Shown here: positions 1-64,000 of the stretch, one piece after another | How positions within the stretch are numbered: position 1 is the first letter of the stretch | Layout: the number at the start of each line of letters is the position of its first letter | Origin: Macrostomum lignano | Lineage: Eukaryota | NCBI GenBank assembly: GCA_002269645.1 | Contig: NIVC01001765.1 | Location: forward strand, 1 to 64,000 | DNA: 64,000 nucleotides | Direction: 5' to 3' | Notes under the pieces: model-generated | The model's database searches: none | What the model was told of the DNA's origin: nothing | What the model saw: the letters and a program-made list of their open reading frames with translations, nothing else | Program-made: the position numbers and the translations under genes

Positions 1-3000
1 AATTGTTTATCTTGATTAAACTTGTTAAGATTGATACTATAAATAGGTTAGATAAATAATTTGGGTTGACATAGGCAACTTACCAATACTGTTGAACACC
101 AATCCTGTAGACGGATTATCCAAGTCCAGTACGAACCCATCAGATGATACCGAAACAGAGAGTCCGTTCTCATCGAGAGAGGTCACGGTAGAAAAGTACC
201 GTTGACCTGGCCCAAATTGCAGCCCATTGAATGTATAGGTGATGTTTCCAGGAGGTATGACGACGTTTGCAAACATCGTCCATTCCGATCTCACTGCCAA
301 TAGACACGCGGAATGACAGCGGCGGTGCTTCGTTTAGACTTGTGAACTTATTTCGCCACCCTACAGTCAGACTGTCATTACTGGTTATGAAATCGGTATC
401 CCGTCGACTATCTGGTGACAACAGGTCCTTGACGCCGACACCGTAGTGTCGATTCACTCGCGGAAAGGTCGGGTTGACCAGTACAGCCTACACGTCCGAG
501 CTGAACACGACGTACGTGTTGTGATCAAACCAAGCCCGAACAAACACCTTGTATGATCTAAATACATTGAGGCGACGCCCAGCTGTGATATTCAATGCCA
601 AGAACGTCCTTAGACCGACGTCATGCCATACACGCTCGTGAACAGCGTCGTAGATACCCTTCGGCTCACTGTACTCAGCCAGACCTGCACTCACTTCATA
701 ACGAACAGGTGGTCGTCCCATTGCTCGACGGACTCGCCAAGTCGCTGCCAACAGAGACCTAGTCGGAGTTGTTTCTGCATCAGTTTGAGATTCTCCTCGA
801 GACCGATCTAGAACCTCTACTTCGTTGTCGACGTTATCCACTACATCGACGGCTCGACACTCAGTTCCTCGGCAGGTCTGATGCTGCGGAGCGCACGAGC
901 AGTGCCCGTAGCAAGTAGCTGCGCCAGCACACCGACGAAGGAGGCCACAAGTGACCACTTTCCAGCACGGACAATGCCGCTTGAACTGGTTGACTGTGGA
1001 GACCGGCCTGAATCAGTAAATTACACACTTTCAAGTTTAAATAGTAGCTTCACAGTAAATATCCAACTGACTATTACCTTGTTGACTGCAACAATGTGCA
1101 CAATCAAGGACGTGCCCTCAGTTAGACTTCTCTTCAGTTCAAAGCTGGCCATCTGAATTGGACCTTCGTGAGGATTTAGCGGTAGACCAACTCCTTCGTC
1201 ACTGTGCGGAACCTCTGTGACCTAAATAACAAAAGCAGGCAATGCGGTTTTGTGATAACTATTTCGCGGTAACTTTAAAAAATTCTTTGTGGTTCACAAC
1301 CTACCGACAAAAGCTCCGATCCGAACCATGTTGTGCCCATCTGAACGGTGTAGCGATCGATTCCCGAGTGAGGATCGTGGAATCCCACCCAGCTGATGTT
1401 GACTTCGTTTCCATCCCACGTGAGGCCATCCTCGATGTGTCTGCCCAGCTGCACGGCCGACTCTGTCGCGGCGGCTACGTGTCCGTGATCGGAGGCGAAG
1501 TGTCCACAGCCACGAGGCCGTCTGACGAGTGCATGCGTCCGCCAGGTTGCACGACACGAGGTGAACAGTGTAGTTGGCTCCGTCTTTCAGATCGAGATCG
1601 CTGAATGTAAAGTTGCTCAGCAGACCGGGAATCTGCGATGTCAACAAGAGTGCGCAGCATTAGTTTACGTCTCAAAATTGAATAAATCAGCTGCAAAACT
1701 AGGTCAGATACCTTAACGGGCTCGAACGTCACTCGTCCGTTATCATGGTTAGACAGAGAGATCCAGTGTTCTTTGATGCCGCTCTCCTTGTCAAAGACGC
1801 TCCACTCTACCACCATGATGTCGTCCAGGACGAGCCAGTTCGGCTCAATCTGACCGAAAGTCTCGCTTGCTGAGAGAGCAGTCTCGATCTCGGGAGGTGT
1901 GTCGTCAATCAGAAACTTGCTCGACTCAGTCAATGTCGTAAGACCTAAATGGTTGTAAAAATGTTATTCAAATCTTCAGCAAAGTTTAGCACGATCGACG
2001 CTATGATTACGTCATGCCCGCCGCTCACCTGCTTTATTCACAGTTTCCACAAACACCTTTAGACGTATGCCCGTTGGTAAGCTTCCAGAGTGTCGCACAA
2101 ACTCCTTTCGAAAGTTTTGATCCAGGCTATAACATCCGGCGAGTCAGACTCTTCGCGACCGACTCCCCAACGGTGATATGCAATGTCGGACTCTGGATCG
2201 TTGAAACCGTATAGCGAAAACTCTAGCGATGAGCTGCACATGCAAAAGTACAGCATGCATGTTTAGGCTATGAGTGGCTTTCAGCGTATCAAGTCATTAT
2301 GATAAAATTGTTACTAAAAACACATTTACTCACCTTGATCGCAGGTACTGTTGGTTTGCGTCGCTTGAACCAATCAAGATGATTCCGTTCAACGGAGGTG
2401 TGGAATCCAAAATGACACCATCGGAAGACGCCACAGAACAGAGATCCCCCGCGTTGCAGCCTTTGACATTGACAAAGTACCTCTGTCCAGGTTGCAAACG
2501 CAGGTGGTCAATCTTTATACCTGAAGTAAGCAAAGTACGTCTGTATTCTTTGTTTAGAGTTAGTAATGAGCATAATTAGCTTCGTTTGACTTACTGTGTC
2601 GAACACCGACGTGAAGATACGGCATCACGTCTTGGCAACCTGGACATGATCCGATCGCCACCGAATAGTCCCTCACGTGACTGTGAGGATCATGGAAGTC
2701 GGTCCATTTTGCTGAGATGCCGTCCATATTGAACCGAAAGTTACAGTCGGTGCTGTTCGATACGCTCGGGTCGATATCGATCACCGATCCAGCTACTGGT
2801 GGACTTCTGTCTACGAGCACTGGCTTCGAGTGGTCGCTCGATATAAGTCCGGCAAAGTTCTCAGCTCTCAGCAGCACCCAGTAGTGCTGTCCGTCTCTGG
2901 AGTATGACAGCTGCTTGGTTGTCCACCAAACACACTCGCCATCTGATTCAGTGTACGGAATGACATCAGGACGACCGGGCGAAGATCCGAGACCGACCCA

Positions 3001-63100: not shown

Positions 63101-64000
63101 ATCCCGAGAGCGGAGTACGAATGTACAGATATGGCTTCGGAGTATCCTGTCAGTCAGAGTCGCAACTCATACAAGAGACGACGGGTCTTGAGGCGAGCTG
63201 GGAGGCTCCTGGTCCTGGTCGGTACTTCGTCACGGTAGTCGCTTTCAACAACGCGATGGAGCCATCTGCCGCTGTGTGCTCTGACGGAGTCCTGATCACG
63301 GATCAAAGGCCAGAAGTGAGCCAGTTGAGCATCGAGAGTCTTCGAGTCCGTCCAGGACTCATCCTGGACGCAGCTCGCAGGAGCTCTGGTACCTGACCGA
63401 CCTTGGTCGCAGACAGAAACTTCTAAACGATAATGAGACGTGCAGGTAGAGCCAACAGTCTGCTAATTAGCCCTTGCTACGAGCTCTTAATAATGGAAAG
63501 CATCTCTTTTTCAGAGCTCGAGCAACCGTGATGGCGGACAGCGGAGTTCTGGCACTTGATCTCAGCAAGTTCAATCGCACTGTAGTGCTCACTCACGAAG
63601 GAGAGTTCTGTGAGCAAATCGGACCAGCTGGAACTGAGTTCTATCTCACCAAGGACGACAGGGTAAGGCGCGTGTATTGCTGAGTATTTTTGAGAAGAAG
63701 CTTCTTATCAGAGAGCAGGCACTGCATTTCAGCTGAAACTAAGCTGGATTGCCTCCGACAGTGTTTCCGGACTGAGGCACTCCATCCTGTCAGTAGTGAG
63801 CAACGAGGACTCTGTTTCTGATCTTGCCAATCGCGTAGTCACGACACACTCTAGCGAAATTCTCGACCACATTGATTTGAAAGATGGTCAGCAGATCTAC
63901 TTGACAATAGCGGCAGTAAACAGGGCGGGACTGTCGTCAAACATGGTGTGATTTACACTGCAACTTATCTAGACTGCTTGCTATGAAACGGTGAATGTTT
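48149..64000 (+). CDS. Giant secreted EMI/EGF + FN3/Ig-like repeat protein gene, copy 4 (5' half; continues past the window end)
   Basis: Exons 48149-48189 (MLMTKVVLVAFLIR), 48244-48267, 48817-49029, 49118-49227 (CCPGW) and 59671-59775 (EGF-like) have the same lengths and phases as in copy 1. Intron 4 is 10.4 kb (49228-59670) because of the nested elements. Confidence 0.86.
48290..48788. repeat. (TTAG)n microsatellite in intron 2 of copy 4, split by an insertion
   Basis: Mirror of 15343-15835 but shorter. Confidence 0.93.
48439..48698. mobile_element. Probable solo LTR (260 bp) inserted in the (TTAG)n tract
   Basis: Begins TGTCGT and ends ACTACA (TG...CA, 5/6 terminal inverted match); GTTAG on both sides (uninformative as a TSD inside the repeat); AATATAAATA TATA-like motif inside; absent from the left arm. 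Confidence 0.65.
51705..55437 (-). pseudogene. LINE ORF2 (endonuclease, reverse transcriptase, RNase H, zinc knuckle), split by about four frameshifts
   Basis: APE motifs QINLQH, ILIQEPW, GDLNAHH, SDH; RT motifs FRPISL, QHAFRTGRST, FLDIVGAFD, PQGGVLTP, GYADDV; RNase H motifs CYTDGSK, SDSQAAL, WVPGHVGIRGNE; zinc knuckle CSFC-x8-H-x4-C. Frame changes near 54000, 53870, 53155 and 52270. Confidence 0.92.
55461..56981 (-). pseudogene. LINE ORF1 (low-complexity N-terminus + DUF4780-like core), one frame with two in-frame stops
   Basis: ORF-track pieces 56430-57038 and 55461-56357 are in the same frame, separated by TAG (56432-56430) and TAA (56399-56397). The core 'RLNPDLPASGLVYHRKVRRGETGNSIVLGLS' resembles LOA/Lian-type ORF1 (by eye); no CCHC knuckles. 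Confidence 0.7.
58004..58183 (-). repeat. 60-bp gag repeat x3 (right-arm version)
   Basis: Units NVRMWLGTFEDFVDHCEWDD / NVRTWLGTFEDFADHCEWDE / NVRTWLGTFEDFADDCEWDD. Confidence 0.96.
59268..59644. repeat. 38-bp direct repeat (59268-59305, 59607-59644) flanking a 301-bp right-arm-specific insert
   Basis: TACATAACGCACTACTGTGCCCAGTAGTCAATGTCTCT occurs twice; the left arm has one copy (reverse complement at 10394-10431) and no insert. Confidence 0.9.

Follow-up and report, generated by a model that had tools for sequence, protein, structure and literature searches.

Gene copies and gene model

The stretch of DNA that was analyzed here, referred to as the window, comprises 64,000 nucleotides (positions 1 to 64,000) of sequence NIVC01001765.1 of the flatworm Macrostomum lignano (assembly GCA_002269645.1). 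A BLAST search of the window against itself recovered four partial copies of one 35-exon gene, designated A to D, and no complete copy. The nucleotide identity between the copies is 96-98.7% (A-B 98.0%, A-C 98.0%, B-C 98.7% and A-D 95.9%). The four copies agree with a preliminary description of this DNA, made from the sequence without database searches, that had recognized at least four copies of the same gene. The window consists of two contigs (1-30217 and 31022-64000) that are separated by 804 N. Each contig contains two gene copies arranged head to tail, and both pairs, A-B and D-C, lie within a single gap-free contig. The right contig is collinear over its whole length with the reverse complement of the left contig, and the intergenic parts of the two arms are 91-96% identical.

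The gap between the contigs is flanked by sequence 3 nt upstream of exon 14 of copy B (30217, minus strand) and 18 nt upstream of exon 8 of copy C (31022, plus strand). As these flanks belong to two copies of opposite orientation, each running in the direction away from the gap, no reading frame crosses it. At least exons 1-13 of copy B and exons 1-7 of copy C must be hidden here, which by comparison with a copy on another M. lignano contig (locus L003 of assembly Mlig_3_7) amounts to at least ~7.5 kb (5.1 + 2.4 kb), for a gap that is shown as 804 N. The L003 copy is 99.15% identical to copy B, and the 10 kb upstream of it showed no match anywhere in the window.

The gene model was obtained with an exon finder written for this purpose, based on codon usage and splice sites. 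The program mispredicted within the GC-rich antisense open reading frames (ORFs) of transposons and within short Cys-rich exons, and the short Cys-rich 5' exons were therefore built by hand. The resulting gene has 35 exons and spans ~18 kb, and the consensus of the copies is an open frame of 3,377 residues. Between exons 9 and 35, the 26 introns that were scored are of the GT-AG type in every copy in which they are present. Exons 1-9 of copy D are intact, with AG acceptors at exons 2-9, GT donors at all nine exons and GT-AG introns. Exon 1 of copy A is conserved in copy D at 48149-48189. Two NCBI models of other M. lignano copies, P0005 (BOX15_Mlig000537g3) and P0006 (g1), contain identical N-terminal exon joins, and in both of them exons 1-5 are joined to the exons for the fibronectin type III (FN3)-like part of the protein. 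Intron 3 is short in the copies behind these two models. In this way, the N-terminus that had been pieced together in the preliminary description (signal peptide, RVTKR, basic run RSRLGRRRRK and CCPGW) was recovered with each element in its proposed place. The coordinates of the copies, exons, protein segments and repeats are given in Table 1.

Table 1. Features of the window and segments of the 3,377-residue consensus protein
Feature	Coordinates	Strand	Remarks
Copy A, exons 1-31	1..15974	-	3' end past window position 1; 5-6 private indels of 1 bp (exons 17, 27, 29 and 31)
Exon 1, copy A	15934..15974	-	start codon and signal peptide MLTTQVVLVAFLIG; phase-2 donor GG/gtgagg
Exon 2, copy A	15103..15315	-	acidic stretch after the signal peptide, RVTKR, first EMI-like Cys (NLCTYQ)
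Exon 3, copy A	14905..15014	-	basic run RSRLGRRRRK, CCPGW...C; rest of EMI-like module
Exon 4, copy A	10262..10366	-	NIM-like EGF module ICFGRLQYCPNGGSCNSPDFCSNCNPTHYSPRCD, phase 1-1
Exon 5, copy A	10020..10166	-	six-Cys EGF-like module, phase 1-1
Exon 6, copy A	9419..9541	-	six-Cys EGF-like module, phase 1-1
Exons 7-11, copy A	7457..9300	-	N-module, residues ~246-745
Gypsy-type long terminal repeat (LTR) retrotransposon fragment	11429..14110	+	RNase H, integrase; within intron 3 of copy A
Copy B, exons 14-35	21080..30217	-	stop codon 21080-21082; 5' part lost in gap; 5 one-bp deletions in exons 14, 15, 25 and 29
18-bp minisatellite, 19 copies	21368..21709	-	last intron of copy B; open in two frames, non-coding
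Jelly-roll domain (DUF642/CBM-like), copy B	~22949..23456	-
Assembly gap	30218..31021		between the head-to-head, 5'-truncated copies B and C
Copy C, exons 8-35	31022..43059	+	stop codon 43057-43059; 5' part lost in gap; 9 small indels (exons 9-20), including two compensating pairs
Jelly-roll domain (DUF642/CBM-like), exon 32, copy C	40488..40995	+
Copy D, exons 1-15	48149..64000	+	3' end beyond the window; one 1-bp deletion, exon 13, ~63370
Intron 3, copy D	49228..59670	+	enlarged by the same Gypsy-type element, split by a LINE
Gypsy-type element, copy D	50047..51509 and 57453..58262	-	within intron 3
Non-LTR retrotransposon (long interspersed nuclear element, LINE), ~6 kb insertion	51705..57038	-	endonuclease, reverse transcriptase and RNase H ORFs; upstream ORF1-like frame
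Signal peptide	residues 1-18
Acidic stretch	residues 19-68		ends in KR
EMI-like module	residues 69-121
NIM-like and two EGF-like modules	residues 122-245
N-module	residues 246-745
FN3-like run	residues 746-2782
Jelly-roll domain	residues 2783-2961
Four FN3-like domains	residues 2962-3377

Two alternative readings of the coding sequence were rejected. A start at the first ATG (15233, MQDNF...) would yield a protein without a signal peptide, and a relaxed scan found exon 1 upstream of a (TTAG)n repeat. The 18-bp minisatellite in the last intron could in principle encode repeats such as KPKCNH, QPQTQM or NPNATT; the junction FPALTG/RQWQV matches the orthologues, and the frame of the minisatellite differs between the copies. 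The last intron of copy C is larger than that of copy B (603 bp vs 409 bp), with fewer minisatellite units (from ~42200) and several hundred bp of extra sequence, and within its array (42235-42790) the minisatellite is interleaved with this extra sequence. The insertion looked tRNA-like by eye, yet ARAGORN and Rfam found nothing.

In intron 1 there is a (TTAG)n/(AACT)n microsatellite, which counts 123 units in copy A (15343-15835) and 38 in copy D (48288-48439) and places a series of possible AG acceptors immediately before exon 2. The N-terminal region of the Gypsy-type element in intron 3 contains a coding 60-bp tandem repeat, with 6.1 units in copy A (array 11507-11869) and 3.0 in copy D. 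The LINE is located inside the Gypsy-type element of copy D, and the mirror position of copy A lacks it; the LINE is perhaps young and possibly active. Outside the genes, a 21-bp satellite is open in several frames (e.g. MSACGAK repeats) and shows no sign of coding. Finally, the region of exons 1-3 in the Mlig_3_7 loci L002 and L003 (10155-10707) is only 81% identical at the DNA level to the window (15412-14875 and 48713-49257), and 96-99% identical past intron 3. This abrupt change at the intron with the transposon points to two older 5' types, the remainder of the gene perhaps having been homogenised by gene conversion or recombination.

Architecture of the predicted protein

The preliminary description proposed a giant secreted protein with an EMI/NIM/EGF-type N-terminus, a long FN3-like run and a DUF642-like insert, and the ~3,380 residues of the model are consistent with this outline. 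The 3,377-residue model contains 66 cysteines and 23 N-glycosylation sequons. It ends in ...SSVYREVLV, within an FN3-like domain, and as suggested before there is no transmembrane segment ahead of this end: beyond the signal peptide, the hydropathy of 19-residue stretches does not exceed 1.35.

The first cysteine-rich module is a degenerate EMI-like module with four cysteines and the sequence CCPGW. When the segment NLC...CCPGW...C (residues 61-128) was compared with PDB sequences in phmmer, its best match was the EMI domain of TGFBIp, although a weak one: E was 0.24 with the window copy and 0.003 with the paralogue P0006. The module is followed by a single NIM-like unit. A copy has a single NGGxC motif, and 10334 and 59703 are its sole positions in the window; the C-x-NGG-x-C repeats that had been noted earlier thus come down to one such unit and two ordinary EGF-like modules. 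Membership of the Nimrod/Draper group is not supported, given the one NIM-like unit, the lack of an array, of a transmembrane segment and tail, and of a Pfam EMI match. At most the first 7% of the protein answers to that label.

The same region had been taken to contain a furin-type site, RVTKR, at which the protein would be matured. A proprotein convertase could in principle cut after RVTKR and free an N-terminal acidic piece of 50 residues before the EMI-like module: the dibasic KR directly precedes the first EMI cysteine and follows the acidic stretch, the RVTKR site is kept in all M. lignano paralogues seen, and Branchiostoma floridae has VKR/ST at the equivalent place. However, the residue at P4 is Val, which does not satisfy the canonical furin sequence R-X-K/R-R, and the KR of B. 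floridae lies within or beside the signal peptide, whereas in Owenia and Patiria a KR is absent altogether. The second basic run, RSRLGRRRRK, is part of the EMI-like module; as it reads RGSWWRRRQN in paralogues, it is not a conserved site. Considering these differences, cleavage at RVTKR seems rather doubtful, and furin maturation as originally proposed is not borne out.

The N-module is the best-conserved part of the protein, recovering 253 cluster representatives at E<1e-3, with E-values down to 1e-66. An AlphaFold2 (AF2) model based on an alignment of 18 sequences (predicted local distance difference test, pLDDT, 85) is an all-beta chain of around five sandwiches, which in Foldseek matches FN3 arrays, macroglobulin (MG) domains and the rods of bacterial adhesins. 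There was no enzyme fold among the matches of this model.

The remainder of the protein is dominated by beta-sandwich repeats. An internal hidden Markov model identified 18 clear repeats of 105 residues over residues 746-3377, of which 14 precede the jelly-roll domain and four follow it, and several divergent extra ones. In the model as a whole, about 20 divergent FN3-like domains stand before the jelly-roll and four more behind it. The repeats carry a W-x-G-F-x-D-x-x-S-G-I-x-x-Y motif and V-D-x-S/T-P-P linkers. The Pfam fn3 profile reaches 40 bits when summed, which is above the cut-off of 25, in two thirds of the protein; single repeats give E 0.015-0.06 or nothing. Taken together, the summed fn3 profile, the 18 repeats and the predicted all-beta fold of the N-module place the protein in the fibronectin type III superfamily.

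The insert in the FN3-like run matches the DUF642 profile in 11 of the 11 orthologous domains examined (best E 3.7e-8). Its AF2 model (pLDDT 80) is a jelly-roll that resembles carbohydrate-binding modules (CBMs) of families CBM61, CBM22, CBM4 (CBM4-2), CBM16 and CBM6, with target-normalised template modelling (TM) scores of 0.5-0.7. A profile search of PDB with the DUF642-like alignment gave no matches.

Integrity and number of the copies

To survey the indels, the four window copies were aligned with a fifth copy from Mlig_3_7 (L001). This five-way alignment contained 68 indel events, of which around 25 were indels of 1-2 bp within exons. The latter were nearly all single-base deletions private to one copy, and they numbered 9 in copy C, 5-6 in A, 5 in B, 1 in D and 3 in L001. 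Per base, indels were around four times rarer in exons than in introns. Not a single nonsense substitution was found in ~9,600 codons, the lone TAA in copy C being an alignment effect at an indel. The ratio of nonsynonymous to synonymous substitution (dN/dS) was 0.16-0.27 across all pairs of window copies, with a proportion of synonymous differences (pS) close to the intron divergence. The copies have thus diverged under purifying selection, with a dN/dS of ~0.2.

Given this dN/dS, the absence of nonsense substitutions, the intact splice sites and the depletion of indels in exons, we read most of the frameshifts as probable assembly error and not as decay. They are probably consensus errors of long reads, which could not be polished in a sequence to which reads map at multiple loci. 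In exons 9-10 of copy C, two pairs of indels compensate each other (31321-31340, -2/-1, and 31613-31652, -1/+1). The second pair recodes 13 residues, which read TPEEPRIRDFSPA in copy C and DARGATHPRFLTG in the other copies; if real, this would represent variation that is tolerated in a surface loop.

The number of copies is a separate matter. M. lignano is a neopolyploid with three paralogous subgenomes (S, L1 and L2) that differ by 1.9-2.4% in single-nucleotide polymorphisms and by many large indels, and in the Mlig_3_7 assembly 36% of the scaffold length is chimeric and 93% of the read pairs map to multiple loci (PMC10733133). Three Mlig_3_7 contigs hold further copies of the gene, which are 96-99% identical to those in the window at the DNA level and are each cut by a contig end. 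A palindrome that results from a missed adapter in a single read was considered for the window and ruled out, as the two arms differ by the LINE insertion and in satellite copy number. Besides these two differences there is an indel of ~1.4 kb. Given the LINE insertion, the length of the 21-bp satellite (53.5 units at 45369-46492 vs 8.5 at the mirror position 19056-19232) and the intergenic divergence of 4-9%, the arms represent two distinct loci and not one locus read twice.

It could still be that the array is largely a product of the assembly, the right contig being a mis-scaffolded homeologous block from another subgenome (S/L1/L2), and/or that it consists of decaying pseudogenes in which the frameshifts are real. 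The right contig follows the reverse complement of the left one over its full length, the divergence of 2-4% together with large indels corresponds to the level reported between the M. lignano subgenomes, and the chimeric scaffolds and multi-mapping read pairs of Mlig_3_7 would fit mis-scaffolding (PMC10733133). Moreover, the two contigs are joined by an N-gap of estimated length that must hide at least 7.5 kb, and every window copy as well as the three Mlig_3_7 copies either contains 1-bp frameshifts or breaks off at the end of its contig. Nevertheless, the head-to-tail pairs A-B and D-C each lie inside a gap-free contig. Decay is countered by the dN/dS of ~0.2, the absence of nonsense substitutions and the integrity of all scored splice sites, and also by the frameshifts themselves, which are nearly all private single-base deletions, the usual error in a long-read consensus, and which within copy C include two compensating pairs; exonic indels, moreover, are some four times rarer than intronic ones. 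We therefore consider this explanation of the whole array unlikely.

The 'expanded array' of the preliminary description can accordingly be maintained only in part. One head-to-tail pair per gap-free contig is firmly established. For the mirror block, an inverted segmental duplication that really exists and a homeologue that was scaffolded head to head are about equally likely, and all copies as assembled are broken in frame. Given the polyploid genome and the scaffold join, the copy number is probably inflated. The three-subgenome structure and the residual long-read errors can make one tandem pair resemble a four-copy array of broken genes.

An unnamed family, its putative role and its relation to known systems

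The best protein matches of the window gene are M. lignano models with 93-96% identity. Beyond the flatworm, 30 named clusters were recovered, nearly all of which are annotated as 'uncharacterized' and the rest with generic or automatic names. They include cephalochordates (Branchiostoma, with several paralogues), hemichordates (Saccoglossus, with several paralogues, Ptychodera and Glandiceps), echinoderms (Patiria, Acanthaster and crinoids), an annelid (Owenia), a brachiopod (Lingula, a shorter relative) and molluscs (Lottia, Haliotis, Pomacea, Mytilus, Crassostrea, Pinctada and Octopus). No vertebrate, arthropod, nematode or cnidarian protein was found among these 30 clusters, which are a sample and not a survey. 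Representative members are B. floridae LOC118405866 (XP_035661568, 3,412 aa) and LOC118415516, Saccoglossus LOC144354078, Acanthaster LOC110977889, Owenia CAH1787741, Octopus LOC115216576 and Lottia LOTGIDRAFT_165393. A search of the available literature library yielded no mention of Mlig000537 or of six orthologue accessions, and a general search on the extracellular matrix of M. lignano was uninformative, in agreement with the earlier remark that this architecture lacks a functional description.

The collinear orthologues have lengths of 3,050-3,440 residues and are 26-36% identical to the M. lignano protein in local alignments. Three full-length orthologues that were read in detail (Branchiostoma, Owenia and Saccoglossus; 3,212-3,412 residues) are collinear with the flatworm protein and have no transmembrane segment. 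The shared order starts with the EMI/NIM/EGF head (of which the Saccoglossus model retains a part), the N-module and the FN3-like run, and ends with a Cys-rich LxRRC...C motif, the DUF642-like domain and four terminal FN3-like domains. The similarity is thus collinear over the full length, and the DUF642-like domain is found at the same relative position in 17 relatives. On the basis of these alignments the M. lignano protein is the flatworm member of an unnamed family that is present in several spiralian, ambulacrarian and cephalochordate groups. Some members deviate in detail. The EMI-like module of the M. lignano protein has only 4 of the usual six or more cysteines, and an additional acidic stretch follows the signal peptide of this protein, whereas amphioxus LOC118405866 (P0011) has, as judged by eye, an extra Cys-rich WSC-like insert around residues ~1510-1600 that the flatworm protein lacks.

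The N-module also occurs in other contexts. It is combined with a GPS domain and seven transmembrane segments (GPS+7TM) in an adhesion G-protein-coupled receptor (GPCR) of Patiria miniata (LOC119745021, P0009), forms the ectodomain of a tyrosine-kinase model of Mya arenaria ('TIE2-like', P0108) and is found together with a C-type lectin domain in Mytilus. Considering these predicted fusions, the N-module may well be an extracellular binding unit, and its presence on receptors implies that it probably recognizes a conserved ligand.

Taking these data together, we lean towards a rod-like, glycan-binding extracellular scaffold or adhesion protein, encoded by a local cluster of a conserved 35-exon gene; we regard this as a fairly likely role. 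The product would be a secreted glycoprotein of ~3,377 residues without a membrane anchor, in which the chain of beta-sandwiches would form an extended rod with a length in the order of 100 nm. The Cys-rich EMI/EGF head and the N-module could dock onto cells or onto other matrix proteins, and the CBM-like jelly-roll could bind a glycan. The combination of docking and glycan binding would make the protein a scaffold of the extracellular or apical matrix, or an adhesion protein.

Several observations weigh against this assignment. The Pfam EMI and EGF profiles do not match the window protein or its orthologues, even at E 10. The DUF642 score of the window protein is 19.5 bits (E 9e-4, profile positions 4-139 of 157), below the Pfam cut-off of 27, and CBM-like folds serve protein-protein contacts as well. 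Every copy as assembled has uncompensated 1-bp frameshifts, so that none encodes the whole protein, and the two contigs may owe their adjacency to the scaffold join across the N-gap. Finally, the members of the family are known solely from sequences and predicted folds.

A different role, in recognition, was one option of the preliminary description, next to a matrix scaffold. In this reading the product would resemble the Nimrods in acting as an opsonin or soluble pattern-recognition protein, which binds microbes by way of the EMI/NIM head and the CBM-like domain, and the expansion of the copies would serve to diversify recognition. The N-terminal CCPGW with its NIM-like module and the CBM-like fold of the insert are in line with such a role, as are the lectin-type domains in relatives (C-type lectin in Mytilus and, by eye, the WSC-like insert in amphioxus) and the several paralogues in amphioxus and Saccoglossus. 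However, there is only a single NIM-like unit per protein, and its architecture stays collinear in the spiralian and deuterostome groups that were sampled, unlike that of fast-evolving immune families. In addition, the copies differ by ~2% at a dN/dS of ~0.2, without a sign of diversifying selection, and their multiplicity fits the genome-wide triplication in M. lignano (PMC10733133). Given an architecture that is shared between phyla, and copies that evolve under purifying selection and do not diversify, we do not favor this role and consider it quite unlikely.

The reading as a matrix scaffold or adhesion protein can be extended, although tentatively. It is conceivable that the family represents an ancient bilaterian, glycan-binding component (~3,300 residues) of the apical or pericellular matrix in marine invertebrates with soft bodies, that it was lost in vertebrates and ecdysozoans, and that the N-module is an unrecognised ligand-binding unit which in evolution came to be used by adhesion GPCRs (Patiria) and receptor tyrosine kinases (Mya) as well. 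If this is true, M. lignano, which is among the few spiralians that allow both knock-down by RNA interference and transgenesis, would be the first tractable system in which the function of the family could be found. The lasting interest of the locus lies in this unnamed and widely conserved family: a protein that is collinear from flatworms to amphioxus, has no name, no paper and no vertebrate counterpart that was seen, points to a blind spot in extracellular-matrix biology.

As in Draper, CED-1, MEGF10 and the Nimrods, a signal peptide opens the window protein, and a CCxG(Y/W) motif lies within what resembles an EMI module; directly after this come a NIM-type unit (C..C......C.NGG.C..P..C..C) and the EGF-like modules. 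Unlike Draper and the Nimrods it has one NIM-like and two EGF-like units in place of an array, which are directly followed by beta-sandwiches, and unlike Draper and MEGF10 it lacks a transmembrane segment and a signalling tail. Moreover, more than 90% of the protein consists of FN3-like and CBM-like domains, which are absent from the Draper and Nimrod families.

With the EMILINs, multimerins, periostin and TGFBIp the protein shares an EMI-like module after the signal peptide, at the N-terminus of a large secreted multidomain protein. It differs from these matrix proteins in that two core cysteines of the module are missing and in that gC1q, coiled-coil, collagen and FAS1 regions are absent. 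The jelly-roll fold connects it to the plant DUF642 proteins and to the bacterial modules of families CBM4, 6, 16, 22 and 61, given the weak match to the DUF642 profile in all 11 orthologous domains. DUF642 proteins have been described as restricted to seed plants (PMC6651502), whereas here one such domain, in the window copy scoring below the Pfam cut-off, is embedded in an animal FN3 rod.

A further comparison is with the tenascins and usherin, which are large FN3-rich extracellular proteins with an EGF head, and with the FN3/Ig-rod adhesins SiiE and RbmA. A fibrinogen globe, laminin domains and a heptad assembly region are lacking in the window protein. What it has in common with these four systems is the predicted beads-on-a-string rod of beta-sandwiches, with a Cys-rich N-terminal head for assembly or docking, and the modelled N-module resembles FN3 and bacterial immunoglobulin-like (BIg) arrays in Foldseek.

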